From contig NW_025964112.1 of NCBI RefSeq assembly GCF_023055435.1, positions 32,674,001 to 32,738,000 on the forward strand: a DNA stretch of 64,000 nucleotides, read 5' to 3'. A program made the position numbers and the translations under genes. The notes beneath the pieces were generated by a model that had not been told where the DNA came from, did no database searches, and saw only the letters and a list, made by a program, of their open reading frames with translations. The first letter of the stretch is position 1. Every line of letters begins with the position of its first letter. Below, piece after piece: positions 5,012 through 59,292 of this stretch. Origin of the DNA: Haliotis rufescens. Taxonomy: Eukaryota.

Positions 5012-6791
5012 TTAAGCAAAGCGTACATTAAGTGACACCACTACAATTATCAAACACACAACACTGCAAACAAGGGCGATTTTCTTCCAGTGTTCTTTCA
5101 AATACTCCCGCCAGTCAGGCTCCTGATGACAGCAATGCAACAACACGCGGTGAAACATATACTCATTGTCCATATCATTGGGGAGAATGTGTCCATTTTT
5201 GATAAACAGCCTTAATGTTTGTTTGACGGTAGATTCCAAGTCGCTTGGAAGGTCGATGCCTACTTCAGAATCTTTTCCGACTGACGCAATGATAAGAATT
5301 GATGAAGGCAAACCTGAGGGTGAAATGTGACAGAATCTATATTTGTGATCAACTTATTTAACAGTTTGTATTTCTCTCGAATAGGAGGCAAAATGTTTGA
5401 AATAACGCAATCAGCACTCAACATGAACACTTTAAGGCTGTTTTGAAATAAATATGTCAACTCTTTCTGAATATATTTAGTTCTCCTTCTCCATATATCA
5501 ATACTGGATTATTCTCCTTGTTATAGGTGCACGCCTACATACAACCGATATATTTGAATATAATCACCTACCCCGTAATGTGTCAACAATGAGTTCCTCT
5601 TCATCTTTAATGCGAGATGAAACTTGATATATGACGAGGTGGGGGAAATCCTTTTTTAACTTCGATCCCTTCGCTCTGTATCGCATCACATTTTGGAAGA
5701 ATTCGTCTTCTAGACTTTCGGCGTTATTGCTTCTCGGGATGATGATAGTATTTGCTCTCAGTATGTTCTCTACAAGATAAATGCTGAATGTTACATTGGC
5801 CTCTCGGTATAGGAGGCATGTGTTGCAACTATAGGATGTTGTTACGGCAAAAAGGTGACATATTTAAAAATGATTACTATCATTCAATATTACTCTGATT
5901 AGGAAGGAAATTGCTTGGCATCAACCCTTTAATGACAAATGTGTGGTGACTCGAACACCAGGACAATAATTCCCACACACAGAAAGTAAAACTACTTTGG
6001 TTTAGGTGAAGACTCGTGTGTGATAATGAACATCTAGTAGAAACTGTGGTTGATATCATAGCCATATCGCTCATGTACTGTTATCGCAGAGTTTGCTAAG
6101 AGGGCGGTGAATTTTAGTGCCTCTTGGCCACTGAAAATGTCAAACTATAGACACAGTAAATTTGGATCTATTTGTATAAATATTATCAGATGTTCAAATG
6201 GCGGACAACTAGCCTTTTTTTTAGCTTATTACACCTGCACGTTTTGCAATCCTGTGGTGACAAGTTCACCAGATTAGCTTAAAGAAGTGAAAAAGACCGA
6301 TTTATTCTTTAGAACTCCAAGAGAAAAAAATATGTTTTTATATTTTATATATCTTTTGTTTATCCACATCTAAGAAACTAGATGGACGGAAAAATGTTGT
6401 TACTTAAATATTAGAAAAAAAAGCTTCTTGAAAACATGAGATGTTTTAACACATTCTAGCGTCACTATACAAATAGTATTGCCAATAAGCTCCATACGTC
6501 TACGGATCTCACTCTAACATGAAACAAGTCTTATAAGTTGTTTATATGAAGACATCGGACAACCTCCATAACCATGTTTAAAAAAATACCTTTTCTTAAA
6601 TCGTGCATCCAATGGGGCCATTATCATACTTTGTTTTTGTGCTTAGTAATTTGCAAGTGCTCAAAGGAAGCAGAGGGTTTACCTTCCACTATACTAAACA
6701 CTCGAACAATGTATTCCAACTTACCCATGTCACTCCTTCCATGCATTCCCATGCTCTTGTATGTTACTGGACTGGCTGCAACCTTGGACAT
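5012..6791 (-). CDS. GIMAP/AIG1-like degenerate GTPase with C-terminal TM anchor, paralogue 1 (188 aa)
   Basis: Exons 6791-6725 (ATG; 67 nt), 5769-5572 (198 nt) and 5313-5012 (302 nt). Introns are GT-AG, phase 1/1, and the frame is open: MSKVAASPVTYKSMGMHGRSDM/ENILRANTIIIPRSNNAESLEDEFFQNVMRYRAKGSKLKKDFPHLVIYQVSSRIKDEEELIVDTLR/GLPSSILIIASVGKD...WKKIALVCSVVCLIIVVVSLNVRFA. The gene model is well supported by four copies; the family call is inference from motif resemblance. Confidence 0.75.
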
Positions 6792-7532
6792 CCTGGAAAC
6801 ATATTAGTCAGCGGATGTTAATGAAAGTCTGTTTGTTTAATTACATGTGCGTAAGAGTTTTACACCATCATCGAAACCACAAATCGGAACAGGGTAATGA
6901 AAATATAAATCGTAATTGAAAAGTGTAGTCAGGGATGAAGCACGTCTTAAGACTTTGTAAGCAAATAACCTTAACGTCGAACTGACTCTCATCCACAAGC
7001 TAAGAAAACCGACCTACATACGCCTACAAAATAGCAAACCTGTTGACTATCTTGAATATGATACCTTTATGAATATGTCATCATTACAGAATTGGCCTTA
7101 TTGTCTTCCACGAACAATTGCATCCATGTAATCAAAGAACACATTACGTCATTTAGCAAAAAGAGATATTGAAAAAAGAGTGCAGGTAAAGGTCCCCTTA
7201 CAAGACTCTCAATCGATGACAAATGCATCTGATATATTTAATGTACATGACAAATTGATATAGCAGGTCGAGTTTAGGGATGTATATACATACATATACG
7301 GGGCTCGTCTGTTTGTATATATATATACATGTATATACACAGATACATCTTTTGTATGATCCCTGGCTCGGTTGTCAATGTTAAGACAATCTTATGAATA
7401 TAGATTCTATGAAAGGACAGTTTTAATGAAGATCAGGTTTGTCTAAACACAAACTCCATCTGACCAACGGCTGTGCTCTGCAATCATAACAGTAGATTTA
7501 GTGAACATAATAAAACGTGTTTAGTGAGAAAA

Positions 7533-7736
7533 ACTTACCTGTTTACAGCTAGCCCTGTTGAAACGTTCTTCTCTTCAGATCGTCAAATAAATACTGTGCA
7601 GGAGCTGGTATAATATTGAGTTATCAGCCTCGGTTTCATGCATGCAATGTCTGCCTGTTAGACAGCAATTGGACCGTGACACAGAGCGCTCAACTCACTT
7701 CCCATAGCAGAGGATATTCGACAGCTACAAGTAAGT
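7533..7736. promoter_or_regulatory. Putative bidirectional promoter with two outward-facing non-coding first exons (copy 1)
   Basis: Minus-strand donor CAG|GTAAGT (acttac, 7533-7538) and plus-strand donor CAA|GTAAGT (7731-7736). The block is conserved at 19545-19729 and 59661-59862. Confidence 0.55.
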
Positions 7737-8204
7737 GGTATTAACGTTATTTTCATCACGAGTGCTTTAATAATGATATCAACAGCAGAAGTACTATATG
7801 TCTTTATTCATAATACTGAGAGGCCATAGGCCTATAGTACATGTTATCTAGTAAAGGGTGTATATACATTTATTAGGTAACACATGTGGAACTCCTTAGT
7901 TTCCTAGTATTTTTCGTTACTAGCAGCAGCAGAAGTAAGGTCCTATTATTTACAGAAGCTGGCAGCCTTCTAAGAAAAAAAGTATAACCTATTATCTTTA
8001 AAAGTGGACACCTAACTCTATTTGAAGTTACTAGTTTTAAGATGTGCACATTTTAGGTCAGTGTAATGATTTTTTATACAGAAAACAAAAAAACAAGGTA
8101 TGCAGAGAAGTTATAATCAATAATTATTTTGTCTTCAATGATGAATTTAACTATTTTGACCATACATTGTTTTTTTATTATTTGTATTTGATGTCATCTT
8201 CGTC

Positions 8205-8385: not shown

Positions 8386-10899
8386 CAANNNNNNNNNNNN
8401 NNNNNNNNNNNNNNNNNNNNNNNNNNNNNNNNNNNNNNNNNNNNNNNNNNNNNNNNNNNNNNNNNNNNNNNNNNNNNNNNNNNNNNNNNNNNNNNNNNNN
8501 NNNNNNNNNNNNNNNNNNNNNNNNNNNNNNNNNNNNNNNNNNNNNNNNNNNNNNNNNNNNNNNNNNNNNNNNNNNNNNNNNNNNNNNTAAGCTGTTAAAC
8601 CCTAACCCCATCTCACTTCATCTCTAATGTTGTATGTAACTGTAGAGGTTTCATGCCTCATTAAACTTTGTAAATGTGTATGACAGACCTTTTTATTACA
8701 TTCTACACCTAAATTGCACATTATGAGAAATGGTCAAGTATTCTCTATAAGAGTAAATCAGTATCAATAAAATCGTAACATAGTGTTAGCTTCAATATCG
8801 AAAACATAAATAAAATGTTTTGGTATATTTGTATCGGAATACATAGGTAGAAAGAGAATAATGCATTTTGAAAACACACTTCTCTTGATTAATCCTGACA
8901 TGGGAGATGTTGTCATTGAAATTTCGCAAAATTAAGTAACGTTGCTTTGATAAATTAGACAATGTCGTCGGTATCCCCGCCATTTTAGGTATGCTGTGTG
9001 TTAAGTAACACTGCCAGCAATATTCTAGCTATATTATGGCGGTCTGATATGATACAGTTTGGAGCAACTTGTTGCATTGTAAACGCGAAAAGAACTACAA
9101 AAATGTCAAACTCCAGAATGACAAAAGGCAGAGTTAAACACTTACCTGAAGTGTACATAAAGTTTCACGATGAACGGTTTAGGAGTTACATGTATGCTCC
9201 AGAAATGAAACGTGACAGATGAACTGTCTGTATCCCTGTGTGTTAGATTTAGCCATTTGTGTGAAAACATAATTTATCATAACTACTCGTACATCATAGT
9301 ATCCATCAAATACTATCTTTAATTTACGTACTGCTAAGATTTCTTTTCCTAACGTCTGAATTAACGACCTCTTATTTTCTGTTTGATGTATTTAATCTAA
9401 CCTACTGGCGCAATAAAAACAACAACATTTAAACAACAAACATGGCGCCGGACGAAACCGGGAAGCTCGGTCACTTCGCACTGCATTTGAAGCAGAACTG
9501 TTACAATAGGGAAAAGTTGTTGTTTTATAAATAACGTATAATAGGAACTACTAACCAGTAAATCTTTACTGGATGTGAAATATCTTCACTGTCGACTAAG
9601 AAATGTCAGTGTTGCGAAGCCCGGCTAATGCCGCTTGTCGGCTACTTCGTTACCGGTAGTTCCAGCAAAATGTTATTTTCGCTGCAGTGAAGATACCACT
9701 TTTCTGCCATTGTGGTGAAAATACCACCTTTCCTAAACTTTAGAAATCTCTGTCTTTCACACTTAAGTATATGAAAAATATTTATAAAACCTTTTTCTAA
9801 GGTGTATCCTTACTTACAGTTGTGATGGAAACACACGTCTCTTTACGATATGTGCATTGTTTGGCTTCAATCACATCTTAACACTGAAGTTTAGGTACAG
9901 TTTCGTCAATACTTTCATCAGCCAGGCTGCGAGTGCGGTCTCGGATTATGCCCTTGCTGAAATTTAAGGTCTTGTGAGCAGGACAGCTAACGGTTAGATC
10001 AACCAGCTTACTTGATGTCATGAGATTGATAGCCTCTGTTTTCTTGTACATTCAATGAAAATATATACGGATATATCTACGTGCTGTATTGGTGCAATTG
10101 AGGCTGATAGCAATACGACACACACACATTCTGTACAGTAGTAAGTCAAAGATATGGATTCAGGTTGATTGCAAGATGGCCATAACCTAGTCAGGGTGCT
10201 TTTTGTGACCGAGTCTGAGGCGTGCAATGGCTATTTCAGTTTTCATTTCATTTGAGTATGAGTGTGGCTTTGGGTAGATCTTTGGTTGAATTTTGCACAG
10301 CCATCTGACGATTTACTGCAGGACTGTCGGAAATGCTAGAAAATACTTTTCTGGTTTCACTTAATGTATACGAATCAGAGGGCTATGAAAATAGCATCTA
10401 TCAAAATATCGCAAATGTACCTAATCTAGCCTATCCTAACTGACACTGTGATTAGACTCAAAAGCTACTTTTACGGGTAAAATGATGAAAAACTTACAAA
10501 ATATGCGTGTGTGAACTGGCCTGTAGCCTGAGGTAATTACCTATTACCTGTCCCGAGTTGATGACCTCACACCAGCTTGTGCACTGTCACAGGTGCAAAT
10601 GGTCTAAATATATTGCTGTTATTGTACTTTATTGAGACATGCGTTAAGATATGTACTGCATTATATTTGCTTGGAAAATGATGGAATAGTTTAAAGCTAT
10701 TAAACTGAGTGACTATTGGAAGTTTGGAATTTTTTAATCAAGAAATATTTGCTGTTCTACAGATGATTTCTTTAGCCAGCATCTCACTCATCTGATAACA
10801 TATCTGAATCTGCACTATCACTCAAAGGTATGACAACCAGTGCAACAAGGCTGATATATACGCCACCATGTTGGCGGTACTGACGTGATCTTCAAGCCT

Positions 10900-11900: not shown

Positions 11901-13278
11901 GCTATGGCTAATGCTACCTGCATCATGGGAGCAGAATTGACAAAATAAATGTAGCGTCACTTTGTTATTTTCTAAGCTGGACAACTCGAATGTTCTCAAA
12001 TTGACTTGGTTTTTTTTATTTGATGTTTTATGGAGACTACATTATTACTTTTCATGCTTAAGTCCGCTTCAGACTGCCCTCATTGGACTTGGTTTCTGAA
12101 CTTGAAGTTTTTGTGCAATGTTTCTCTGGTAAAATTGTCGATAAGACTCATTGTGACGGAAATACTTCAAACCACTTGTAGGTAGATCATTAGTTACTCG
12201 ACATTCCAATAGCAACAGTCTTTAAAACATTCTATCTTGTTTTAACGGACATATAGCATTTCCGACAGTACTTTAGCGTCCCATTGGGCTTGCCATTTTT
12301 GAGCGATGTCGGATTTGATTTTGCTCTTTTTCTAGAGCCAGCTTCGCCAGTAGGTCTGTGAATCTTAACACCTATACTTTAATCTGGATGAAATTATATT
12401 TATACAGCTTCTAATAAAAGATCCCTACATTGATGATCATATTAAACATTAATACACACAATACGTTCAAATCAATTATTATTTCTGTAATTAGGGTTCT
12501 AAAACTATGAATATCAGTAGGAATCTATTTAGCAAAATTCCACACATTTGAAAGACATTCCACAGCTGACATAATCCAATATTTTTTTCAATACCCATGA
12601 CCTGTAAAACAGACAGCTGCACTGTTGGAATATTAGAGCATCCTCGGCAGTCAGTTGAAAGGGGTCTTGGTCCATCCCCACTGATTTCATCCATAAGCCC
12701 TTACATTTGACAAGCACGTTCTGAGCAGAATAGGATATAGAAGAAAACATGAAAGTATGAAAGTTCAGGAAAAGAGGAACGAAATAATTTTACATGGAAA
12801 CTCATAACGATGCGAATGTTCCGAATTTCCGACTGTTTTCCAAACATTGCTATCATTATACTATACTGACACTAGATTCCATGTTCTTGATCACATTTAT
12901 CTTATATTTTCTTACAGATTCCTAAACTGAATGTTCTGTAACGAGATTAAGGTTCCAACCTAAATAAACGCATGTTGTTAGGCTACTTGTAACATTGTGA
13001 GTGTATCACGCCGTATGTAGTCAGATATATGTAATGTAACACATGAACTTTCCCAACTATCCAGTGGACAAAAGCACGATGAACGATCCAAACCCGTCGG
13101 GGCGCGATGACACACAATCATCCACTCTTTTCGAAACCAACCACAGGAACCGCATGTGTCGAGTCTTACGACCAGCATAGGGTTTTCTCTTTGCAAAGTA
13201 CTCTTTTCGAAACCACTACAACCGCATTTGTCGTGTTTTACGACCAGCAATGGGTCCCGTCTCTGCAACGACCCCAGC

Positions 13279-13578
13279 CGCATTTGTCGAGTCTTACGAC
13301 CAGAATGGATACTCACGTCGTTACAACCGGAGACGCATTTGTCGAGTCTTACGACCAGAATGGATACTCACGTCGTTACAACCGGAGACGCATTTGTCGA
13401 GTCTTACGACCAGAATGGATACTCACGTCGTTACAACCGGAGACGCATTTGTCGAGTCTTACGACCAGAATGGATACTCACGTCGTTACAACCGGAGACG
13501 CATTTGTCGAGTCTTACGACCAGAATGGATACTCACGTCGTTACAACCGGAGACGCATTTGTCGAGTCTTAAGACCAG
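13279..13578. repeat. 55-bp minisatellite, about 5.4 near-perfect copies, with degenerate copies upstream (~13150, ~13222)
   Basis: Unit cgcatttgtcgagtcttacgaccagaatggatactcacgtcgttacaaccggaga starts at 13279, 13334, 13389, 13444, 13499 and 13554. Confidence 0.97.
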
Positions 13579-13704
13579 CATAGGGTACTCTTTTGAGTTA
13601 CCAGTTGCAACGGCTGGAACTGTATTCGTCCACAAAACACCAACCAATAGTTAGTGAGCTGAATTTCGAGCTCAGACATACATGGGGTGAGCAGAGTTCC
13701 GAAA

Positions 13705-14790
13705 CATATGTGATGTGATCGGAGTTTCCAGCTCATACATACGTGAAGTGATCTGAGTTTCCAGCTCATACATACATACATGTAGTGAGCGGAGTTTCCA
13801 GCTCATACATACATACATACATGTAGTGATCGGAGTTTCCAGCTCATACATACGTGTAGTGATCGGAGTTTCCAGCTCATACATACGTGAAGTGATCTGA
13901 GTTTCCAGCTCATACATACATACATGTAGTGATCGGAGTTTCCAGCTCATACATACATGTAGTGATCGGAGTTTCCAGCTCATACATACATGTAGTGATC
14001 GGAGTTTCCAGCTCATACATACATGTAGTGAGCGGAGTTTCCAGCTCATACATACATGTAGTGAGCGGAGTTTCCAGCTCATACATACATGTAGTGAGCG
14101 GAGTTTCCAGCTCATACATACAAACATGTAGTGATCGGAGTTTCCAGCTCATACATACATGTAGCGATCGGAGTTTCCAGCTCATACATACATGTAGTGA
14201 GCGGAGTTTCCAGCTCATACATACATGTAGTGATCGGAGTTTCCAGCTCATACATACATGTAGTGAGCGGAGTTTCCAGCTCATACATACATGTAGTGAG
14301 CGGAGTTTCCAGCTCATACATACATACATGTAGTGAGCGGAGTTTCCAGCTCATACATACATGTAGTGATCGGAGTTTCCAGGTTCGACATTGTACATGT
14401 GGTGGGCGGTGTGTGTGTGTGTGTTAGTGTGTGTGTTAGTGTTAGTGTGTTTGTGTGTGATTGTGTGATCNNNNNNNNNNNNNNNNNNNNNNNNNNNNNN
14501 NNNNNNNNNNNNNNNNNNNNNNNNNNNNNNNNNNNNNNNNNNNNNNNNNNNNNNNNNNNNNNNNNNNNNNNNNNNNNNNNNNNNNNNNNNNNNNNNNNNN
14601 NNNNNNNNNNNNNNNNNNNNNNNNNNNNNNNNNNNNNNNNNNNNNNNNNNNNNNNNNNNNNNNNNNNNNNNNNNNNNNNNNNNNNNNNNNACATACATTT
14701 AGTGAGCGGAGTTTGCAGGTCATATATACATGTAGTGATCGGAGCTTCCAGCCCATACATACATACATTTAGTGATCGGAGTTTCCAGTT
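13705..14790. repeat. 33-bp minisatellite (with +4 cata variants), interrupted by assembly gaps
   Basis: Unit catacatgtagtga(t/g)cggagtttccagctcata, about 20 copies before the gap; it produces the repetitive YELETP/SWKLRS ORFs. Confidence 0.97.
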
Positions 14791-15664
14791 TCGACATTGT
14801 ACATGTGGTGGGCGNNNNNNNNNNNNNNNNNNNNNNNNNNNNNNNNNNNNNNNNNNNNNNNNNNNNNNNNNNNNNNNNNNNNNNNNNNNNNNNNNNNNNN
14901 NNNNNNNNNNNNNNNNNNNNNNNNNNNNNNNNNNNNNNNNNNNNNNNNNNNNNNNNNNNNNNNNNNNNNNNNNNNNNNNNNNNNNNNNNNNNNNNNNNNN
15001 NNNNNNNNNNNNNNNNNNNNNNNNNNNNNNNNNNNNNNNNNNNNNNNNNNNNNNNNNNNNAATATGATATTAATGACACAAAATAAAGGCATTAGCTAGT
15101 TCATTAAATGTCCATGTTTCCTGTGTCCTGAATACAAAGTGTCTACAGCTGTTGTCATAACAACGGGTCGGCAGCGTGCGCGAAATCAATTCTTTGTCTA
15201 TGATCGAACACATGATACATGTCATGGTGACATTCCTGAAGTGCAATCCGACTTCAGCCACCCAGATGTGACTGACTTCCCCATTGTTGGATACAAGTCA
15301 CCGGGAACGAGTCTATTGATGGTTTATTTATCCCAGCACATGCATTTGTAATAGGTGAGGTATTCAGTTACCGGTTAAAGTTTCGTGTCATGTTTCTAAA
15401 ACTAAATAAGCGTAGCTTGGGGAAACAGTGGGTAATGTTGTAGTTTATTGTCTATCTGTTGCAAGCTATCTTGATTAGACCTAAAATGGGCACGCATACA
15501 GTGTCCTTCGTGCCTTACATGATTTATTCCAACCATCAGACAAACAAACACATTGCCAGTCTTCAGTATAATAGAAACATTACATCACATCGGTTTTAGA
15601 AGGAGAACTGGGTTGGTAAACAAGCACGTCATGCTGCTATTAATTCTGCTCCATCAACTGAAAG

Positions 15665-15822: not shown

Positions 15823-16963
15823 CAACAACAAAACAATTAGCAAACCTGGTTACAGAATGCGAATTGGCAAATAACATAATGTATAAACACCATTAGGAAG
15901 TATTAACATGAAGACCTAGTTGACTTGCGGATTTCACTTTCTCACAATGCGACTTTTCGGTAAAGAGGCTGGTTGCTTTATCCACCTGCTTGATAAAGGT
16001 AATAGCATATGCACTGTAACCTCGCACTGTAAGCAAAAAGTTGAAATCCATGTGAACTCTGTCTTCATCGTTACTACAGCTTCTGAAATGCCACTTAAAT
16101 ATACATACTAATGTTAGAAACATTACCGCTGAAATAGTTTACAATTTCTAAGTATATCCATGAGTAAAATTGTACATGCATTGTATTCCTAACAATATCA
16201 TAATGAGCACAGTGAAGAAGTAATGAAGTGCACTTTCGGTGGTGCAGGAAGGAGATGGTGCAACATTTTGGAAACGGTTGGCAATTTAAATCGACTCCCT
16301 CAAACGAATTTCATTTAAGGAAATTGGTTTAGTTTTCAAAACCACTTTGCGGTTCACTGTTAACACGATCAGATTTTACAGTCAGTTGACTGAATTGGGC
16401 ACTTAAGTTTCCGCATCACTGTGAATTCTAATGGATTTTTGTCTTTTCAAGACATAGTTTAAGGTAAGAAACTAATATCATCCAGCAATGTATAACGATT
16501 TGGTTCTGCGACTGTTGGCGATAAAAGTTTGCATAAATAATCGGGTAATATAGGCTTCAACATTTTGGAGGTTGGCAATATAAAGCGATTTCTTCTCTCA
16601 CTTGAGGAAGTTGGATTAGTTCATAGTAAATTCTATCATAACGTGTTCCAGGAACTGCACCATATACTCTTCCGTAACGCTTCTACATTTTCCAGGATGA
16701 CACATTGTTGTTTTGTACAGTTATACAAATATAACTACAGTATTCGAATAGTAGGGTAAACACCATATACATAGTTTCCAGGGTTATCTTTGGGAGGCGA
16801 TTGTTACAAAGGAATTTAAAGGATATAAATTCAGGAATTTACAGTTGAATATTCCTGGAGGGGACAGGACATACGGAATGTGCTTTAAGCTGGAACGAAA
16901 TGATCTAGAAATACCAGCCCCCTCACTTCAGAATGTGAAATGGAGGTTCCAAAACAACCATAT

Positions 16964-18609
16964 TTAAGCAAAGCGTACAATAAGTGACACCACTACAATT
17001 ATCAAACACACAACAATGCAAACAAGGGGGATTATCTTCCAGTGTTCTTTAAAATACTCCCGCCAGTCAGGCTCCTGATGACAGCAATGCAACAACACGC
17101 GGTGAAACATATATTCATTGTCCATATCATTGGGGAGAATGTGTCCATTTTTGATGAACAGTCTTAATTTTGGTTTGACGGTAGATTCCAAGTCGCTTGG
17201 AAGGTCGATGCCTACTTCAGAATCTTTTCCGACTGATGCAATGATAAGAATTGCTGAAGGCAAACCTGAGGGAGAAATATAACAGAATCTATATTTGTGA
17301 TCTACTTTATAAACAGTTTGTAGTTCTCTCGAATAGAAGTCAAAATGTTTGTAATAACGCAAGAACAAGGACAATGTTTTGAAATAAATATGTCAACTCT
17401 TTCTGAAAATCTGTACCCCGTAATGTGTCAACAATGAGTTCCTCTTCATCTTTAATACGTGATGAAGCTTGATATATGACGAGGAAGGGGAAATCCTCTT
17501 TTAACTTTGATCCCATCGCTCTGTATCGTATCACATTTTGGACGAATTCATCTTCTAGATGTCCGGCGTTACTGCTTCTCGGGATGATGATAGTATTTGT
17601 TCTCAGTTTGTTCTCTGCAAGATAAATGCTGAATGTTACATTGGCCTCTCGTTATAGGAGGCATGTGTTGCAACTATAGGATGCTGTTACAGCAAAAGGG
17701 TGACATTATTTCATTAATTCCTATCATTCTCTATTACTCTGGGAAGGGTATTGCTTAGCATCAACCTTTGATGAAAAATGTGTGGTGACTCGACACCAGG
17801 ACAATACTTCCCGAGCACAGGAAGTAAAACTACTTGCATCTGTCAGAAGCTGTGGCTGCAATCAAAGACGTATTGTTCTTTTACTATCATCACAGAGTTA
17901 GCTTAGAGGGCAGGCGTGTCTAGTGCCTCTTAAGGCCACTGAAAACGTCAAATAATAAAGATACAGACTATGAGTTAATTTTAATTCATTGGTATGAAAA
18001 GTATCAGACACGTTGAAATGGCGGATATCTAGCCTATTTCCGTATTATCTCTATACGTTTGAACTTCTAAGGTGACAAATTCACAAGGCCGATTTATTCT
18101 TTCAAACTTCAAGAGAGAAAAAATATATATTGTAAATCCGAGACAGAAGGTGAATTTGCCCACACTTTTCTTGTTGTTGTTTTTATCTACATCTAAGAAA
18201 GTCAGTTTGGATAGAAAAATTGCTCTTGTTGAAATATTAGAAAAAACACTTTCCATAAACATCTAAAATCAGCTGTTTTGACACACTTTAGCCACACTAT
18301 GCAAAAATCATTGTTATATGTCCGACAGATCTCACAGTAAAATGAACCAGGTCCTATAGTCGTTTATATGAATACATCTGATAACTTCCTTAACGATGTT
18401 TAAAAATCGATCATTTCCTAAATCGGGCATGAAGTGAATCAAACATTATCATGGTTTGTTCCTGTACTTAATCATTTATCTGTACTCAATGGGAGTAACG
18501 TGTTTAGGTTCGACTATACTAAACACACGTATTCCAACTTACCCAAGTCGCTCCTTCCATGCGTCCCCATGCTCCTGTATGTGGCTGGGCTGGCTGCAAC
18601 CTTGGACAT
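16964..18609 (-). CDS. GIMAP/AIG1-like degenerate GTPase with C-terminal TM anchor, paralogue 2 (188 aa)
   Basis: Exons 18609-18543, 17614-17417 and 17265-16964 (67/198/302 nt), open frame: MSKVAASPATYRSMGTHGRSDL/ENKLRTNTIIIPRSSNAGHLEDEFVQNVIRYRAMGSKLKEDFPFLVIYQASSRIKDEEELIVDTLR/GLPSAILIIASVGKD...IIVVVSLIVRFA. The middle-exon donor is a weaker GTACAG. Confidence 0.75.
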
Positions 18610-19544
18610 ACTGGCAACATATTTTTAAGGACGTTGATGTTGAAGAAGTCCTGTTTTGTGTACATACATTTGTGTCAAACGTTACACAATGTTATTGAAT
18701 ATACAGATCGGAATAGGTTATTGCCCTGATAATGGAAACATAAATGACAATTGAAAAGTGTAGTCAGGTGATACATGTACATTCGTTTGCTGCTCAGCAC
18801 ATATTGAAGCATGTATTATTGCTTTGTAAGTACATAACAGTAATGTCAACACGACAGTACGACAGTTCTCAAAAACCTATCTACATATTCCCAGCAAACC
18901 TGTTGAATATCTTTGTGTGTTGAATATAAGATCTATGTCAATATTAATACATCATTACATAATTGACCTTATTGTCTTCAAGAACATTTACATTTATGTT
19001 AGGTCCAAGTTGGATCAATCACAGAAAACATAACCTCATTAAGCCCCATGCCAAAAGACGTTGAAAAATGACTTCAGGTAAAGGTTCCCACACAAGCCTA
19101 CTAAATATTATCGATGAAATATGCATCTAAAGTGCATACCACATAGGTATGATTATAGTAGATTGAGTTCGTTGACGTATATACACACGTTNNNNNNNNN
19201 NNNNNNNNNNNNNNNNNNNNNNNNNNNNNNNNNNNNNNNNNNNNNNNNNNNNNNNNNNNNNNNNNNNNNNNNNNNNNNNNNNNNNNNNNNNNNNNNNNNN
19301 NNNNNNNNNNNNNNNNNNNNNNNNNNNNNNNNNNNNNNNNNNNNNNNNNNNNNNNNNNNNNNNNNNNNNNNACACNNNNNNNNNNNNNNNNNNNNNNNNN
19401 NNNNNNNNNNNNNNNNNNNNNNNNNNNNNNNNNNNNNNNNNNNNNNNNNNNNNNNNNNNNNNNNNNNNNNNNNNNNNNNNNNNNNNNNNNNNNNNNNNNN
19501 NNNNNNNNCAAGGTTTCATCTTACAATGTTTCATGTTCATGAGA

Positions 19545-29832: not shown

Positions 29833-29901
<69 letters not shown>

Positions 29902-34740: not shown

Positions 34741-34744
34741 GTTT

Positions 34745-43508: not shown

Positions 43509-45104
43509 TTATACAATAACTCTCCGCATTAATTTAAAACCAAACCATACAATTAAGAATGGCACCGTTACAATTATTAAACACATGTCGCCAACAAAGG
43601 CGATTTTCTTCAAATATCTCCGCCATTTAGGCTCCTTTTGACAGCAATGCAACAGCACACGGTGAAACATGCATTTGTTTTCGCTGTCATTGAAGACAAT
43701 GTGTCCATTTTTTAAAAACAGACGCAAAGTTTGTTTGACGGTAGATTTCACGTTGCTTGGAAGGTCGATGCTTACTTCAGAATCTTTTCCGACTGACGCA
43801 ATGATAAGAATTGCTGAAGGCAAACCTAAGGGAGAAATATGATAGATCATATATGTATAATTAACCTTGTATACAGGTTGGTGTTTTCTCCAAGAGCAGT
43901 CAACATGTATGAAATAACACATTCATTTTTCTAACAGTAACAACCCATCCTAGTCATTTTATATTTAGGCTGAAGTGCTTGATAGGCATTTTGAAGTTGG
44001 AAGAACCTGAAGACATGAGACTTTTTAAGGAGGGTAACTTCTTTAAATCTTTGTCACGACGTTTCATAGCTACTTCTGTATGTCAAAGATTTAGGCTGTT
44101 CAAATAAATATGTCAACTTATTTCCGAAAAGATGAATCCCTCACTCAATACTGTTTCATTCCTCTTGACTACGTATGACATATGCCGTTATCAGTGCACG
44201 TGTTCGATATATTTCAATAGAATCATGTACCCATTAAAGTGTTCACAATGAGTTCCTCTTCATCCTTAATGCGAGATGAAACTTGAAATATGACGAGGTG
44301 GGGGAAATCCTTTTTTAACTTTGATCCCTTCGCTCTATATCGCATCACATTTTGGAAGAATTCATCTTCTAGACTTTCGGAGTTACTGCTTCTCGGGATG
44401 ATGATAGTATTTGCTCTCAGTATGTTTTCTGCAAGATAAATGCTGAATGTTACATTGGCCTCTCGTTATAGGAGGCATACGTTTGGGGGGGACGGCGGTG
44501 CTGCCTCTTCGGGCCAATTGCTCTTGTTCAAATATTAGAAAAACGCTTCATGACCTATTTTGAGTCATTTTAGCCACACTATACAAATATACTTGTGAGT
44601 CCAATAGATCTTAGTATACAGGTCTTACAGTCGTTTATATGCACACATCGGACAACTTCCATAGCCATAATTAAACATGTGTCATTTCTCTCATCGTGCA
44701 ACCAGTGTGGCAAAGGGGTCATTATCACACGGTGTTTTGTGCTGAAAACATCTGATACCTTCCAAAGCGACGTTTTTAAACCGATCGTTTCCTAAATCAA
44801 GCATGAAGTGGACCTATGGGGTCATTATCATGGTTTGTTCCTGTTCTTAATCATTTATAAGTACTCAATGGGAGTAAAGCGTTTACGGTTCAACTTTACT
44901 AAACACACGTATTCCAACTTCCATACGTCCCCATGCTCTTGTATGTGGCTGGGCTGGCTTGTAATTGAAGCATATTATACGATGATTATTATGATTATTA
45001 TAGAATGAATGAATGAATAAATGTATTTATTTATTTCACATAAATCCGAAGATTCTCAAAGCATCAAGATTAGGTAATTAAATAATTAAATAACACAATA
45101 ATCA

Positions 45105-45173
<69 letters not shown>

Positions 45174-48100
45174 ATGTCCCGCATATTAACAGGCTATAAA
45201 CAGTGAGAAATATTGGTAAGGTTACCACACGTTGTTTAGGATATGTTTAATTTGATATAAATACTTTAAGATTTCAATGATAGTGAAATGCCTCGTTATT
45301 TCATCAATGTCATTGTTATCTGCACCAAGAAAGAATGCTAACATATCATGGTCTTCCATCATCTCTATTTTTACATATGTTTAACATCAAGATTATCAAT
45401 TAGAGTGAAAAAGAATACATCTCTATCTGAAAGTAGACATTCACAGTTTAAGATGACATGGTGATAATAATCATGAGCAAAAGTATTACATTTTGTACAT
45501 TCTTTTGATATTTTGGATCCAATCCTTATTATATACTGTATTTCTTCTCTCATTTCTGGATATAACATTACAATGCTGTATAACACATGAGGAGTACATG
45601 TAAGTGTTGTGTTAATTTTAGAATATCGAGATAGGTCTGCTCTACATGATAGTTATATTTCCATACTTCTTCCTCGTGGGTAGTTATTTTATTTAACACA
45701 ATCTTTATCCACTTAATCTTCGCGGGGAATTCCCCTGTGCGAACGTAGTGAAATACATGATGGAGTAGCTTATATTTCTTGGCTGTTGAAAGCAACACTC
45801 CACATAAACTGTGTAAATTATTGTTATGAAAGTAATAGAGTGAAATTGATTGAAAACAGTTTTACAAATTGAGACACATGAGTTGTTGCAGAGACGCCCC
45901 AGCAGCTGTAGTCTACATTTATCTATATAGCCAACCATGCTCCAAAGTCCTAGATTAGCAATAGTGGCATCAGTGGGGGAACGTTGGTCAAAACCTTGTA
46001 CAATCCTTGCAAAGTAACGCTGGGTGCTTTCAGCTAATTCAAGATCTTTACCATGCAGAGGAGGTAGTAATTCACATCAATAAAAGCTTGTTGTTAAGAT
46101 CATTCTTTTCCATATCTCAATACTTGCATACGAATGTAAGTCACTACTATTTAGACCAACAGAGAGGAGAGAATTATTAGTACGCCTTGCAGCTCTCTTC
46201 AATATATAATTTGAAAGAAAGATTACTTTGTAGAACAACACCCGCATATTTTACATTATCAAACAAAGGCATATCATAGTCCCCAAAGGGATAAGCATAC
46301 GTTCACAATAATTGCTTCTTTTTATGAAACACAACAATTTTACTTTTCGATGCATTATAAGTTAATCGCCATTTGGATGCGTAATTAACAACTGTATCTA
46401 AGGCTGTTTGCAGACCTTTAGGGCTGTAACTGATAAGAGTAGTATCATCAGCAAGTAACACTCATGGTAAACTAACATTATATATACATATTCCTGTATC
46501 TAACTGCCAAAGCTCAGTTATGAGGTCATTTATGTACACAAGAAAAAGCAAAGCTGAGATAACTCTACCCAGACCTATAACCTTATCTAACAGCAAATGC
46601 ATCAGATTGTTCGCCCTTATACTGAACACACGCATACATGGAAGTATAACAGTGATGTAACAGAGACCACATTTTACCTCTAATACCAAGATGATAGAGT
46701 TTTACAAAGAGACCCGAGTGCCATATTCGATCAAAAGCTTTCTCGTTATCTAGAAATGCTGTGTAGATACATGATCACCTGTTAACATAACTTTGTACAC
46801 ATTCGATGAGGTTAAATAGCGACATAACAGCACCGTCTTTCTTCCTAAAGCTAAACTGCAATATACGGGAAAATTACAGGCATTTCGGGATGTCCACGTT
46901 TCTAATCTTTCTGAGAGAATTTTCTCAAAAAGCTTACTAAGGCAAGATGTTAGCGTAATACCTCTATAATTTACAGGGTTTGATTTATCCTTTTTACCCT
47001 TATAGATAGGTATAATTACCCCGTGTCTATAGGCTGCAGGTGTGTACTGAAGTTTAAGAATAGCATTAAATAACAGTGCTAACTTCCCTACTAGCAGCTC
47101 ACCACCAAACATCACATGTTCATTTTTAATATTGTCAGGACCAGGTGATGTGTTCCTCTTCAGTGTCTGTACATATCTAATCACTTCCTGAACCGATATT
47201 TCAGCACATAGTACATTATCAACACATGAGTTAGATTCATTACTGGAGGCTAATTTCTCAATTTCATAGTCAATACCATCTTTAAAGTCTTGATCGAACT
47301 GGTCGGAGTCATATGGTTTTGCTAGATCCGCATAGTACCTACCCCAAAGCTGACATATGTCAGTGGGAGTTGTTACATTACGGTCATCATATGTAAGTTT
47401 TTCAACTCCGATCTTCTGTTTACGTAGTTTTCTTACAGATTTATAAAACGTATTCACATCAGTATCACAAGTTTTTTCTAATTCCAATCAAAATTTCTTT
47501 GAAAAGGCCTCCTTTGACTTTCTGTGACGACGTCGGAATTCTCGCTTAACCTGCTTGGATGATGCTTAAGAATGGACATTATCCCCCCTTGGTTTTTTCC
47601 TCGGATAACCATCTCCGCCTTGCAACTCGCATGTTATAATGGTCTAGGTGTAGCCCACCCTGTTTCCAGTAAGGCTTCAGATTAGCCTTGAAACTACCTA
47701 CTGGTATAGACTGTCTTACTGGCATCAATTATACATTTACTGATCCCCGTATTAAATGATTCAATATCATCGCGTTTATCTATTGATAAACAAGTCTCTG
47801 CATTGTTTAGCAGTGTATCAAGACAGACCTTGTACGAAGAGATCTCCATATTGGAAGCTTTGTCCCATTTAACAAGACATGCTTCTTTAACCTTTTGCTT
47901 TACATTATCATGTTTTAGCCAGTTTTCTTATTCAGCAATGATATCGACATAGTCCGGTAAAATAGAGTTGATATGTTCGGTCTGATGAGACACACCAAGC
48001 ACATTCCAGGTCAACACACTTAGTGCCATCACAATAGACAACATAGTCAATATGAACATAGCCATTTTGTTAGTAGATGTTGCTCCTGTATTCTTGCTGT

Positions 48101-48210
48101 TGTTGTTGTTTCGGATCAGTTTGACGCTGCCTTGCCACATAGTCTCATGTGGTAACCTTACCAATATTTCTCACTGTTTATAGCCTGTAAATATGCGGGA
48201 CATTGATATG

Positions 48211-48246
<36 letters not shown>

Positions 48247-48715
48247 TATATGCTCTTGTTCAAATATTAGAAAAACGCTTCATGACCTATTTTGAGTCAT
48301 TTTACACTATACAAATATACTTGTGAGTCCAATAGATCTTAGTATACAGGTCTTACAGTCGTTTTATGCACACATCGGACAACTTCCATAGCCATAATTA
48401 AACATGTGTCATTTCTCTCATCGTGCATCCAGTGTGGCAAAGGGGTCATTATCACACGGTGTTTTGTGCTGAATACATCTGATACCTTCCATAACGATGT
48501 TTTTAAACCGATCATTTCCTAAATCCAGCATGAAGTGGCCTATGGGGTCATTATCATGGTTTGTTCCTGTGCTTAATCATTTATCTGTACTCAATGGGAG
48601 TAACGTGTTTACGGTTCGACTATACTAAACACACGTATTCCAACTTACCCATGTCGCTCCTTCCATGCGTCCCCATGCTCCTGTATGTGGCTGGGCTGGC
48701 TGCAACCTTGGACAT
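43509..48715 (-). CDS. GIMAP/AIG1-like degenerate GTPase with C-terminal TM anchor, paralogue 3 (193 aa); promoter block missing, possibly non-functional
   Basis: Exons 48715-48649, 44428-44231 and 43825-43509, open frame: MSKVAASPATYRSMGTHGRSDM/ENILRANTIIIPRSSNSESLEDEFFQNVMRY...FPHLVIFQVSSRIKDEEELIVNTLM/GLPSAILIIASVGKD...HIVFND...CLIIVTVPFLIVWFGFKLMRRVIV. The first coding intron holds a 3.2-kb LINE and a broken duplicate of the ATG exon. Confidence 0.65.
44519..45004. repeat. Local ~500-bp direct duplication (partner 48251-48763) containing a broken copy of the ATG exon
   Basis: Both copies start tgctcttgttcaaatattagaaaaacgcttcatgacc and end ...atgattattataga. In this copy the donor and the ATG are deleted (~44915-44960). 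Confidence 0.92.
45005..48140 (-). mobile_element. Decayed APE-RT LINE with internal deletion
   Basis: APE start LSVLTWNVLG (~48.0 kb), RT motifs SPGPDNIKNEH, NYRGITLTSCLSKLFEKIL and LLADDT; aataaa plus (ATTC)n tail at ~45005-45035. Confidence 0.9.
45108..45170. repeat. (TA)n microsatellite; a second tract at 48207-48250
   Basis: Seen directly. Confidence 0.95.
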
Positions 48716-49449
48716 ACTGGTAATTGAAGCATATTATACGATGACTATTATGATTATTATAGATGATAATATAATCTGTGTAAATAGATTTGTGGAAAGC
48801 GCTTTACAACACCATTGAACGTACAAATCGGAACAGGTTATTGCTCTGATAATAGAAATATAGATGGCATCTCAAGTCATTTCAGGTAGGCTGGGCATCT
48901 CCAAACTTCAAATAATGATTGAAATTTGATGTTTTTCCGTGTTGCACTTGTCAAGACAAGCAGAAACAATGCATACCGAATCCCTACAACACGCGTTTTT
49001 CTATACCCTGGTTTACATCATCAATTGCATGATTTTGTTTTGTCAACAGATCATGCTTTTCTGCAGAGGTTCCGTTTGTGTTACATGTTTTCAAATATCC
49101 CGTTTCATATCCCGTTTAGCTCGTCTCCCTGATATTGTTATGTGTCGACTTCTAAATTGAAACAATCAGTTAAACCAGTAAGAATTCAGTGTGTATGGAA
49201 ACAAGATATTTTTTTATATTTTCAGCCACATGTGCACCTCTGGAACCAGATATTTGTTTTATTGCAACTATGAGACTAAATATATATTTTTAAGAAACAC
49301 ACATTGCACCAATGTATTCTCTGTGGCTGTAAATAACCATTTTTCAACAGTCAGAAGCACAATGTTTTTTATTTATTTAACCTTAATGGTTAATTCATTG
49401 TACAATTTTTGAAACACCCTATATGTTTTTACAACTATTAATACTCAAT

Positions 49450-51129: not shown

Positions 51130-52640
51130 AAACTGACGGCCAAAAGAAACGTTACCAACGATATTTCTAGGATAAAATATGACCAACACATTTTGAAGCA
51201 GCAATAACAATTGTATTGTAGAAATTCATCATTCAGAACAGTAAAATGCAAATTTACTAATTCAACAACAAAGTCCTTGACCTCCAACAGTGACATTTTT
51301 TGACAAGGGGTCATTCGTCCAGTATTCGATCAACAACATTGGTTACAACTTTAAGGTGACGACGGCCCAGACCGTTCAATACGGGATATGACCTCCATGA
51401 GCGGCAATGCATCTTCGAATGCGGCGCCGAACTGAGTAGACAAGCGTCCTCACATCGACTGCAGGTATCCGATTCCATTCCTCACGGAGGTCAACGATCA
51501 ACGCTTGTCTCGTTTCCGAAAACGATGCCCCAGCTGGTCCCGCAGATGTTCTATGGGTGACAGATCTGGTGATCGAGCTGGCCACGGCAGGACAGTCACG
51601 TTGTTGGCATTGAGGAAGTCTCTAGTAATACGGGCTTTATGGGGTGTGGCGTTATCTTGTTGGAACACCGTCCGTTGTTGACGCTGGATGAAAGGAAGAA
51701 CCACTGGCCGTAAGATATTGTCAATGTAGCGTTGTGCTGTCAGATTGCCTTCGATTATGACAAGTTCAGTCTTCTCGTCCCCGCAAATGCCGCCGCAGAC
51801 CATCACACTTCCGCCCCCGTAAGGTTCCACCTCCTGGACACAACAAGGAGCCGTACGTTCACCACGTCGTCGATAAACTCGCGTCCGCCCATCAGGTTTG
51901 AAGAGTTGGAAGTTGCTCTCGTCACTAAACAGCTCTCGCCGCCATTCCCTTTGTTGCAATCGCTGGGTTGCCTGCACCACGTCAATCTGGCACGTCGATG
52001 TTGACGGGTCAAGGTCATGCCCTTGAAAGGGCGAAAAGCCCGGAGACCATAATGTCATAGTCGTCTGGTCACTGTTTGTCTGCTGACCGGATGTCCTAAG
52101 CTGTTGGCAGCTGATGCCGTCACAGTAAGAAATCTGTTTCTCAGATGAAGTACCCGTAAAAAGCGGTCATCCTGCGGGGTCGTGACGTTTGGTCTGCCAC
52201 TCCGTGCTCTGTCTGCGTTTCTGCCAGTCTGTGGGAGACGTGCGACCAGTCCTGTAATGGTCATCTTGGAGCAGTTCATGTTAATGGCAACCGCTCTCCG
52301 TGTCGGTCACACCTGCAGCATACCTGTGGCTCTCTCTCTCTGGACAGCGGTCAGTCTTGGCATGTTCGTTGGTGTTAATCATCGCAACCAATGATAGGGA
52401 ACAGATCCGTGCGTAATTTATACCCGGAAATTGCACGATAATTTGGGAAAGAATGTTTTAAAAATTTGCTGACAAACACCAATATCTCCCAAAATCCGCA
52501 AAGCACGCGCAAAGAACGACAGAGAACATGAAGGCTGTATTCGTGAGATGTGTTCTTTACTGTTTTTGAACAGGTTGGCATCTTTGTTTCAAAGTGGCAA
52601 ATCAGTTAATGTTGGTAACGTTTCTTTTGGCCCTCAGTTT
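51130..52640 (-). mobile_element. Full-length Tc1 (DD34E) DNA transposon with disrupted transposase
   Basis: 30-bp TIRs aaactga(c/g)ggccaaaagaaacgttaccaac at 51130-51159 and 52611-52640. Transposase 52363-51376: MPRL..., RSGRP, FSDES, QQDNATPH, SPDLSPIE (34 residues between D and E); stop and frameshifts. Confidence 0.95.
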
Positions 52641-56672: not shown

Positions 56673-56925
56673 TACCCGTGAAGATCCGGGGTAGAATAGG
56701 TTGCCATGCTTGCCGTAAAAGGCGACAATGCTTGTCGTAAGAGGTGACTAACGTGATCGGGTGGTCAGGCTCGCTGACTTGGTTGATGCATATCATCATA
56801 TCCCAATTGTGTGGATGCTCATGATGTCAATCACTGTATTGTCTGGTCCAGACTCGGTTATTTGCAGGCCGCCGTCATGTAGCTTGAATATTGCTGAGTG
56901 CGGCGTTAAACAACAAACAAACAAC
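56673..56925 (+). mobile_element. Interspersed SINE-like repeat family C
   Basis: Homologous to 35563-35820; (caaa)n tail. Confidence 0.85.
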
Positions 56926-57570
56926 ATAAATTCATTTTATCTATTTATTTTCAGAAGACAAAATGGGTTAGTAACAACGTGCATCTATTAATACTGCCCC
57001 ATCAAGATAAAGGGTTAAAGCCTTCGCTCGTCATGCTGAAGATCATTGTTCGATTATATTTTGTCCCTTTATCATGGTTAAACATTTTTGAGAAGGCTGT
57101 GTACAGCGATTTCTTCCTTCACTTAAGGAAGTTGATTCAGTTCACAGTAAATTCTATCATAACATTTTCCAGGAACTGCACCACATACTCTTCGTAACGC
57201 TTCTGCGTGAAAATTGTCCAGGATGATAGATGTTGTTTTGTTATTGTATATTTTGTTATTCAAATATGACTACAGTCATATGTAGTTTCCAGGGTTATCC
57301 TTGATAGGCGATTTTAAAACGAATTTACATCTACATAAATTTGATTGACATTTGCTCCGTCAAGACAATAAGTTCACAGTCGCATTACAGGGGCTGTGTC
57401 AGTTAAGGAATCCGCCATTCGAGGAGGAGACAGGACATTTTACAGGACATTTTACGACATGTCCAGTGCACATAATGAAGGCGATTCGAGCTAGAATAAA
57501 TTTATCTAAAGAAATACCAGTCCCCCTCACCTCAGAACATCAGCTGATCGTTCCCAAAGCAATATTTCTT

Positions 57571-59292
57571 TTAAGCAAAGCGTATCATAAGTGCCACTAT
57601 TATAATAAGCAAACACATGACACCGCCAGCAATGGCGATTTTCTTCCAATGGTCTGTCAAATACGTCCACCAGACAGACTCCGGTTGACAGCAATGCATC
57701 AGCACACAGTGAAACGTGTGTTCGTTGTCCATATCATTGGGGAGAATGTGTCCATTTTTGATAAACAGACGCAATGTTTGTTTGACGGTAGAATTCAAGT
57801 CGCTTGGAAGGTCGATGCTTACTTCAGAATCTTTTCCGACTGATGCAATGATAAGAATTGCTGAAGGCAAACCTGAGGGAGAAATATAACAGAATCTATA
57901 TTTGTGATCAACTTTATAAACAGTTTGTAGTTCTCGAATAAGACTCAAAGTCTGTGAAATAACACAATCAGCATTCTAACATGAACAAATTATCATAGTC
58001 ATTATATATTTAGACTGTTTTTAAATAAAGATGACAACTCTTTCTCCAAGTATGTGTACTCAGTATTGTGTTATTCTCCTTGTCATTGGTGCACGTGTAC
58101 TCAAACTCGATATATTTGAATATAATCACCTACCCCGTAATTTGTCAACAATGAGTTCCTCTTCATCTTTAATACGTGATGAAGCTTGATATATGACGAT
58201 GGCGGGGAAATCCTCTTTAAACTTCAATCCCATCGCTCTGTATTGTATCACATTTTGGACGAATTCATCTTCTAGATGTCCGGCGTTACTGCTTCTCGGG
58301 ATGATGATAGTATTTGCTCTCAGTATGTTTTCTACAAGATAAATGCTGAATGTTACATTGGCCTCTCGTTATAGGAGGCATGTGTTGCAACTATCGATGT
58401 TGTTACGGCAAAAAGGTGATATCTATCTATAGTAATTAGTTACTATCATTCAATATTACTCTGACTGGGACGGGAATTGCTTGTCATCAACCTTATGATG
58501 GGACATGTGTGCTGACTTGGACACCAGGACCTTAATTCCCGAACACAGAAGTAAAACTACTTTGGTTTTGGTGAGGACTCGTGTGTGACACTGAACTTCT
58601 AGCAGAAACTGTGGTTGTAATTAAATCGCTCATATATTGTAATCACATAGCTTGCTGAGGGGATTGGGTATATTTAGTGCCTCTTTGGGGCACTGAAAAT
58701 GTAAATTATACAGGTATGAATAGTATCAGACATGTTGAAATGCCCAGCCTAGCCTTTAGTCCTTGTTACACCTGCACGTTTTGAACTTCTGATGTGACAA
58801 GTACACCAGGACAGCTAAAAGAAGTGAAAAAGGCGGACTTATTTATTCGAACTTCGAAATAAAAATATGCATGATAAGTTCGAAACCAGGGTGAATGTTT
58901 ACTATTTATACTTTTGTTACTATGTATTTTCTATTTTTAATCTACATCATTGCTCTAGTTCAAATATTTCACACATTTTTACATATTTAGCCACACTATA
59001 CAAATAGCATTGTTCATTGTATCAAGTCCAATAGACCTTACTGTAATTTTTTTATAAATCTTCTTGTCGTTTAAATGAACACATATGATAACTTCCACAA
59101 CGATGTCTAACAAGCGATCATTTCTTACATTATGCATCCAATGAGGCAAAAGGGTCATCATCATCCTTAAGTCTTTAATGAAAGTAATACGTGCAACAAT
59201 ACTAAACACACGTATTCCAACTTACCCATGTTGCTTCTTCCATACGTTCCCATGCTCTGGTATGTCGCTGGACTGGCTGCAACATTTGACAT
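57571..59292 (-). CDS. GIMAP/AIG1-like degenerate GTPase with C-terminal TM anchor, paralogue 4 (188 aa)
   Basis: Exons 59292-59226, 58331-58134 and 57872-57571 (67/198/302 nt), canonical sites, open frame: MSNVAASPATYQSMGTYGRSNM/ENILRANTIIIPRSSNAGHLEDEFVQNVIQYRAMGLKFKEDFPAIVIYQASSRIKDEEELIVDKLR/GLPSAILIIASVGKD...WKKIAIAGGVMCLLIIIVALMIRFA. Confidence 0.78.

Follow-up and report, generated by a model that had tools for sequence, protein, structure and literature searches.

This study identified a family of four small genes in a 64,000-nt stretch of DNA from the red abalone Haliotis rufescens (NCBI RefSeq assembly GCF_023055435.1, contig NW_025964112.1, positions 32,674,001 to 32,738,000; the whole stretch is hereafter called the window). 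The encoded proteins consist of a predicted alpha/beta domain and a predicted C-terminal membrane anchor, they lack the sequence motifs of nucleotide-binding G-domains, and they occur in the genus Haliotis only. Two of the four copies (B and D) lie head to head with genes for P-loop GTPases, and we tentatively propose that the family may be a nucleotide-independent, G-domain-like membrane adaptor acting with these GTPases, a reading that we regard as possible rather than probable. A preliminary description of the same DNA had taken the proteins for relatives of the AIG1/GIMAP family; our searches do not support this kinship, and in practical terms the chief outcome is that the family should not be labelled GIMAP.

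Gene Models and Distribution of the Family

The gene models were obtained by six-frame motif searches and by reading of the splice sites, which identified four three-exon paralogues on the minus strand within 55 kb, here called copies A to D (Table 1). All introns of the four paralogues are of the GT-AG type, and both introns are in phase 1. The four copies share an exon 1 of 67 nt and an exon 2 of 198 nt, and their exon 3 measures 302 or 317 nt. The splice sites confirm the four three-exon coding sequences with 67- and 198-nt exons of the preliminary description, and copies A, B, and D correspond to NCBI models, namely P0002 (LOC124152180), P0001 (LOC124152181), and P0003 (LOC124152178), respectively, with which their exon translations are identical (22/22, 65/65, and 99/99 residues). 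Each of these three proteins is 188 amino acids (aa) long and is named "uncharacterized protein" by NCBI; the protein of copy C would have 193 aa. The further claim of a 67-nt exon 1 in every copy holds for A, B, and D, and in copy C only by way of a distal candidate exon. The whole-protein work on A, B, and D used P0002, P0001, and P0003, and copy C and the neighbouring GTPase were handled exon by exon. The window contains five N gaps, all of which are intergenic, with the exons and introns of the four copies gap-free; therefore, the four reading frames are independent of the gaps. The quantities that do depend on them are the distance between A and B and the sequence from 583 nt upstream of the copy B ATG.

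A search with the family profile found these four copies only in the 1.33-Gb H. rufescens genome, and relatives in a collection of 5.8 billion proteins came from Haliotis only (rufescens, cracherodii, rubra, and asinina). The family alignment consists of 7 proteins from these four species. Among 1.84 billion representative proteins, nothing was retrieved beyond Haliotis save one fish von Willebrand A (VWA) domain, which is weighed below, and one repetitive protein (P0008), which was rejected as spurious. The family profile matched PDB sequences by chance only, in aspartate aminotransferase. Pfam returned nothing relevant at E ≤ 10 for 8 exon peptides and 7 full proteins, in a search from which weak matches may be filtered out, and the ESM Atlas returned only unnamed chordate clusters at 0.82–0.86, under the lead threshold. 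A literature search found no paper mentioning these loci. The family is, on these data, restricted to Haliotis.

Table 1. Positions in the window of the exons of the four family copies, of the duplicated exon-1 region of copy C, and of the GTPase gene beside copy B.
Feature	Position	Strand	Description
Copy A exon 1	6725-6791	-	67 nt; ATG at 6791; donor G/GTAAGT; translation equals P0002 residues 1-22
Copy A exon 2	5572-5769	-	198 nt; phase 1 at both ends
Copy A exon 3	5012-5313	-	With stop codon; its product comprises the final strands and helices, the CC motif, and the predicted tail-anchor transmembrane segment
Copy B exon 1	18543-18609	-	67 nt; equals P0001
Copy B exon 2	17417-17614	-	198 nt
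Copy B exon 3	16964-17265	-	With stop codon; 96% identical with exon 3 of copy A
Copy C distal exon 1	48649-48715	-	Candidate exon; intact 67 nt; 66/67 bases as in copy B exon 1
Copy C exon 2	44231-44428	-	198 nt
Copy C exon 3	43509-43825	-	Stop codon present; 104 codons; extended basic tail; 100/104 residues match P0006
Copy D exon 1	59226-59292	-	67 nt; equals P0003
Copy D exon 2	58134-58331	-	198 nt
Copy D exon 3	57571-57872	-	With stop codon
Degenerate exon-1 duplicate of copy C	ca. 44886-44985 (approximate)	-	Within intron 1; ATG lost through a 17-nt deletion and donor through one of 16 nt
P-loop GTPase gene, G-domain exons	29072-31632	+	Head to head with copy B
GTPase exons	29072-29263 (GQTGFGKSS); 29940-30098 (VIDMPG); 30458-30617; 31310-31632 (LTHID, stop)	+	
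Relic of linker and tail-anchor transmembrane segment	31669-31740	+	In frame after the GTPase stop codon (31630-31632); interrupted by stops

Predicted Tail Anchor and Conserved Residues

One C-terminal hydrophobic 19-mer, located within residues 163–185 and with a Kyte-Doolittle hydropathy of 2.3–3.5, was observed in each of the family proteins (7/7), and the tail that follows this transmembrane (TM) segment has 3–17 residues. A hydrophobic N-terminal segment or signal peptide is absent from all 7 proteins, in which no N-terminal 10-mer exceeds a hydropathy of 0.66, and the structure models described below place a terminal helix at residues 166–187. As a predicted topology, the C-terminal tail anchor is well supported, in agreement with the preliminary description, which had recognised a compact, tail-anchored, multi-copy protein with a conserved Cys-Cys (CC) pair before the TM segment; the CC pair lies in the juxtamembrane segment and is invariant in 7/7 proteins.

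Across the 7 proteins, which are 60–88% identical, 69/188 positions are invariant. They include the clusters SSRIKDEE, at the end of strand 2 and the start of helix 2 of the predicted fold, and SVGKDSE and IDLP after strand 3, as well as KNGHI, a further invariant polar stretch after strand 4. The variable parts are the loop after strand 1, which occupies the position equivalent to a P-loop, the juxtamembrane segment, and the TM segment.

Predicted Fold

Two AlphaFold2 models, calculated from the 7-sequence alignment with P0001 and P0004 as targets, agree with each other (mean predicted local distance difference test score (pLDDT) 73.9 and 73.6; predicted template modelling score 0.64 and 0.63, respectively). 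In the models, residues 1–18 are disordered, a helix extends over residues 21–28, and strands are found at residues 30–33, 66–71, 93–100, and 118–127; beta-alpha units alternate from about residue 20 to residue 153, followed by a juxtamembrane segment of lower confidence and the terminal helix. The predicted structure is a cytosolic alpha/beta three-layer sandwich of about 130 aa, which would be flavodoxin-like or minimal G-domain-like.

The comparison of the models with 48,161 chains by VIA-align, a tool for which, according to its calibration, a Z under 8 may mean a common arrangement only, gave a flat list of top matches at Z 6–8. Of the top 50 matches, about half are GTPase-type domains, at Z 5.7–8.1; they include the ROC domain of LRRK2 (8.1 and 7.4), RagD (7.0), CENP-M (6.9 and 6.7), and IRGQ (6.4), together with Roco2, MnmE, Era, and G-alpha. 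The other alpha/beta matches are the TIR domains of RPS4 and SIGIRR, SEFIR, CheY-like receivers, NrdI, and flavodoxins, at Z 5.8–7, and the TIR domain of TIR-STING, at 7.7 and 7.6. A G-domain without its antiparallel strand has a flavodoxin-like topology, which would explain the mixture of GTPase- and flavodoxin-type matches. The most frequent reading of these matches would be a degenerate G-domain, possibly one of non-AIG1 origin. As for GIMAP proteins, GIMAP7 (3zjc_B) was found at Z 5.5 and rank 32 within Foldseek's top 1000, below ROC, CENP-M, and the receiver-like protein CpaE, and it was outside the top 50 of both wide searches. Similarity to P-loop GTPases, on which the preliminary description depended, is lacking at the level of profiles and ambiguous at the level of structure.

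Relation to AIG1/GIMAP

According to the preliminary description, the proteins contain a stripped-down AIG1/GIMAP G-domain with a deleted switch I and a degenerate P-loop, acting as a pseudo-GTPase scaffold or decoy comparable to an inactive GIMAP1 or GIMAP5. Several observations are in line with this proposal: GIMAP1 and GIMAP5 are tail-anchored, the motif series aligned by eye is colinear, the best local hhalign segment (residues 74–90) falls approximately on the AIG1 conserved box in the very register proposed, GIMAP7 is among the fold matches, and the abalone genome, with at least 83 AIG1 matches, would offer a possible source. Nevertheless, we consider it a very improbable explanation. 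Pfam at E ≤ 10 lists no AIG1 for the exon peptides and proteins, with the same reservation about filtered weak matches, and the family profile retrieves no GIMAP chain from the PDB sequences. The whole-genome search with PF04548 gave at least 83 matches of about 200 aa each with few or no stops, none of them inside the window, and these abalone AIG1 matches are largely uninterrupted, whereas the domain of the present family is split by two phase-1 introns. A hidden Markov model (HMM) built from 31 AIG1 domains of the same genome scores the family at −2.0 to 2.1 bits, which is the level of reversed or shuffled sequences. In hhalign, the score is 19.5 against 20.5 for the reversed control (null 13.7 ± 2.4), and 3% of column shuffles equal it.

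The alignment by eye does not exceed chance. FPHLVIYQ..RIKDEEE pairs with the AIG1 conserved box in one alignment, and a different segment, LPSAILIIASVG-KDSE, pairs with it equally well in a second; therefore, the resemblance to AIG1 is probably that of any hydrophobic strand with an acidic helix after it. The segment FPHLVIYQVSSRIKDEEE does resemble GPHAFLLV..RFTEEE, but the sequence in reverse reaches 17.6 on that region, and reversed exon 3 matches the box, too. The motif strings that had been quoted are present in the sequence; however, only copy C contains HIVFND, and "GRSD" is not conserved, its R being replaced by Q in H. asinina and H. rubra, where the string reads GQSE/GQSD, in a segment that is disordered in both models (pLDDT <50). 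The absence of nucleotide-binding motifs noted in the preliminary description is confirmed: the G1 P-loop pattern GxxxxGK[ST] is not present, its candidate G(M/T)HGRSD having the wrong spacing and no Lys; no G3 motif DxxG follows any strand in the 7 proteins; and "SVGKD" does not fit the G4 pattern [NT][KR]xD. The family is not a demonstrable member of AIG1/GIMAP.

Neighbouring P-Loop GTPase Genes

The GTPase gene beside copy B (Table 1) has a paralogue of 92–96% identity that lies 40 kb rightward, just past the edge of the window, and has copy D as its head-to-head neighbour. Contigs C346 and C68 carry about 24 paralogues that are more distant (loci L065–L088). Homologue searches with two last-exon open reading frames (ORFs) found nothing within the allowed length range that would name these GTPases, and the P-loop exon gave only generic P-loop matches, including GIMAP2 and GIMAP5 at E 0.26–1.7. 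In 11/24 of the other GTPase paralogues, the last exon ends in a hydrophobic TM segment followed by no more than about 8 residues, which makes a tail anchor frequent in this GTPase family, and the GTPases beside B and D have no TM segment in their last exon. Past the stop codon of the GTPase beside B, the same frame reads PLSYGSVLALNSILVLG, a stop, and PV, and this stretch matches the tail of the TM-bearing paralogue L081 (tblastn E 0.007, 2.2-kb target), which suggests that the GTPase beside B lost its anchor secondarily.

Upstream of copy A, the segments 7431–7797 and 8601–9008 match the 5' regions of the two GTPase genes (19544–20803 and 59560–59921). It seems that copy A retains a truncated piece of a GTPase partner that lay head to head with it, and the gap at 8389–8587 lies inside this remnant. 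The plus-strand GTPase gene also contains a G-rich tandem repeat of 26 nt at 25684–28257 (about 100 copies, 88% matches), which is probably intronic since its period is not a multiple of 3, and a related array occupies 60560–64000 in the GTPase paralogue at the right edge of the window. At L083, L085, and L088, the first codons of the last exon (IHLVLTHL...) recur in a minisatellite that lies upstream of it. The long ORFs at the GTPase paralogue loci were rejected as fused genes, being minisatellites.

Signs of a link between the small genes and the GTPase family are suggestive, not proof. Intron 2 of the small genes and the last intron of the GTPases are both in phase 1 and lie four residues before an equivalent hydrophobic strand, in the contexts R[G]LPSSILII and RG[V]LSVHVILTHID, respectively. 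The layout of the last exon is alike in the small genes and the TM-bearing GTPase paralogues, comprising strand, helices, linker, TM segment, short tail, and stop. The soluble part of exon 3 scores 17.6 against the GTPase last-exon profile in hhalign (null 10.9 ± 2.4; reversed 12.2), a value that 3/300 shuffles reach.

Selection and Evolution of the Gene Cluster

The exons of the paralogues are 86–96% identical, with exons 1 and 2 free of indels, and the introns are 45–88% identical with many indels. The ratio of nonsynonymous to synonymous substitution rates (dN/dS) among the paralogues is 0.43–0.77, and the interval excludes 1 only in some comparisons with C (clearly in A–C, marginally in B–C). 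As judged from these alignments, constraint on the family is present and modest. The statement of the preliminary description that the copies are kept under selection agrees with the better conservation of exons than introns but is only weakly borne out by the dN/dS values.

Copy C shows several peculiarities. Its reading frame is open only with the distal exon 1, which lies 4.2 kb upstream, so that intron 1 would be 4.2 kb long. The exon-1 region of this copy is duplicated over about 500 bp (44519–45004 against 48251–48763, 89% identity) in a self-comparison of the window, and the nearer duplicate is degenerate (Table 1). No H. rufescens protein for copy C was found in the collection of 5.8 billion proteins. 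Exon 3 shares 100/104 residues with H. cracherodii P0006; therefore, the C-type paralogue would predate the split of H. rufescens and H. cracherodii. At two positions that are invariant elsewhere, copy C carries the changes R88M and I126L. A weak reverse-transcriptase-like ORF (RVT_1, Pfam E 0.06) lies at 46750–47487 (-) inside intron 1 of copy C, and a DDE_3 transposase ORF (Pfam E 1.1e-14) lies at 51498–52058 (-) between copies C and D.

According to the self-comparison of the window, the relatedness of the four genes extends into their flanks, those of A matching B, and those of A and B matching D. Between A and B, exon 3 and 300 nt downstream are 96% identical and the remainder 72–76%; this jump in identity at exon 3 points to gene conversion between the two copies. 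In terms of position, 4383–5474 (A) and 16333–17410 (B), comprising exon 3 and downstream sequence, are 88–96% identical, and intron 1 and upstream sequence are 72–76% identical. The offsets of about 40 kb that separate A from C, B from D, and GTPase from GTPase suggest that a 40-kb block consisting of [small gene, small gene, GTPase] was duplicated. Between A and B, minisatellite arrays at 13100–14470, beside the gaps 14471–14690 and 14815–15060, give long spurious ORFs in several frames.

Proposed Function and Alternative Explanations

In the mechanism that we tentatively favour, each protein would comprise, in order, a disordered N-terminus of about 20 aa, the alpha/beta domain of about 130 aa, the Cys-Cys juxtamembrane segment, the TM segment, and the tail of 3–17 residues, and would act as a pseudo-GTPase-like adaptor on the cytosolic face of the targeted membrane, with no nucleotide needed. 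Its partners may be the P-loop GTPases next to B and D, for which it could, for example, supply in trans the anchor that they lost. A more specific form of this idea, which we regard as distinctly unlikely, is a "split" tail-anchored GTPase system, in which a degenerate, anchor-bearing, G-like module arose from or alongside the GTPase family, is expressed divergently from a shared promoter region, and brings the anchorless GTPases in trans to the membrane by forming a pseudo-GTPase/GTPase heterodimer with them.

Several points weigh against the adaptor. No sequence method ties the family significantly to any GTPase: the exon-3 signal comes from an 18-column C-terminal helix only, with p of about 0.01 before correction for 4–5 families; exon 2 gives profile z values of 1.2 and −0.8 against the neighbouring GTPase exons; and the pairwise comparison of small-gene and GTPase exons produced one z of 2.6 in 32 tests. 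The loop at the P-loop position differs among species and has an indel. In structure, all fold matches have a Z of 8.1 or less, the level that the tool classes as "common arrangement", TIR-STING, CheY-like receivers, and flavodoxins tie with the GTPases, and Foldseek against the PDB found nothing at E ≤ 1e-3. Furthermore, copies A and C lack an intact GTPase partner, and most dN/dS intervals include 1.

Domain families of immune type are very large in this genome, with at least 83 AIG1, at least 150 VWA, and at least 138 TIR matches. The main rival, which we hold to be unlikely although less so than the others, is a non-GTPase flavodoxin-, TIR-, or receiver-like domain whose sheet has a conserved polar crevice along its C-terminal edge; such a domain would bind or process a small molecule, such as a nucleotide-derived signal, at the membrane. 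TIR-STING is the first or second fold match of the models, the other TIR, receiver, and flavodoxin matches follow in the same list, a size of about 130 aa suits such folds better than a full G-domain, and the strongest invariance is found in the polar stretches after strands 2, 3, and 4 (SSRIKDEE, SVGKDSE..IDLP, and KNGHI). The large number of TIR matches in the genome would also fit, but none of the matches of the genome search with PF01582 lies in the window, Pfam at E ≤ 10 gave neither a TIR nor a receiver or flavodoxin match, no TIR box motif is visible, and the Z values are all within the common-arrangement range. A truncated VWA domain that has lost the N-terminal strand with the metal-ion-dependent adhesion site (MIDAS) was also considered, since the sole non-repetitive match of the family profile among the 1.84 billion proteins is the fourth VWA domain of fish collagen VI alpha-3 (E 6e-4, query 45–120), and hhalign against 23 abalone VWA domains gives the same register. 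This explanation is extremely improbable: 5% of shuffles match that hhalign score, an HMM of the abalone VWA domains scores the family at the shuffled level, exon 3 on its own scores under the null, no VWA domain is in the top 50 fold matches of either model, and Pfam VWA (PF00092) is unmatched, with neither an N-terminal strand nor the MIDAS motif DxSxS present. VWA domains are very common, and yet a single match was obtained.

The genes might, alternatively, be young, fast-evolving orphans that have hardly any conserved molecular function, or none at all, with some of the copies in decay. The dN/dS values and their intervals, the confinement of relatives to one genus, and the state of copy C (the degenerate exon-1 duplicate, the 4.2-kb intron with its reverse-transcriptase-like insert, and the changes R88M and I126L) all fit such a history. 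Against it stand four open frames with exact exon lengths and intact splice sites despite indel-rich introns, the 69/188 invariant positions across four Haliotis species at 60–88% identity, the retention of the C-type paralogue in H. cracherodii, and a confident folded core predicted from just 7 sequences. We regard the orphan explanation as improbable and retain the membrane adaptor as a working proposal.

Implications

At present, the family is an uncharacterised, genus-restricted, tail-anchored protein family with a common fold. If it is an adaptor for the adjacent immune-type GTPases, it would represent an invertebrate GTPase expansion in which the enzymatic module is separated from the membrane-targeting module, and a lineage-specific, pseudo-GTPase-like partner would have been added to mollusc antiviral gene clusters. 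In oysters, IFI44 and GIMAP genes are induced by herpesvirus (PMC8917759).

Comparison with Known Systems

Among known systems, GIMAP1 and GIMAP5 likewise combine a small cytosolic alpha/beta domain with a single C-terminal TM segment and are encoded by clustered multi-copy genes in neighbourhoods of immune type. The present family differs from them in having a domain of about 130 aa instead of about 200 aa, two introns, no AIG1 profile match, and no G1, G3, or G4 motifs.

The best structural match is the ROC domain of LRRK2/Roco proteins (Z 8.1, root-mean-square deviation 3.6), with 110 residues aligned across the whole ROC domain; however, the identity is 12%, the family has no P-loop and a shorter domain, and the score lies at the common-arrangement threshold. 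CENP-M and IRGQ have G-domain-like folds without nucleotide binding and serve as protein–protein scaffolds, as would the proposed adaptor. They show no sequence relation to the family, and their Z values of 6.4–6.9 are no higher than those of the unrelated TIR and CheY folds. CENP-M is a soluble protein that acts at the kinetochore. TIR domains such as that of TIR-STING are of comparable size (about 140–150 residues in the matched chains) and tied for the top at Z 7.6–7.7, but the family has neither a Pfam TIR match nor visible TIR box motifs.

A further system for comparison is the neighbouring GTPase family itself. The GTPases keep the motifs GxxGxGKS, DMPG, and THxD and have more exons, and exon 2 of the small genes is dissimilar to theirs; nevertheless, the two families have in common the head-to-head orientation of their genes, the phase-1 intron before an equivalent strand, the same layout of the last exon, and a weak similarity in the C-terminal helix.

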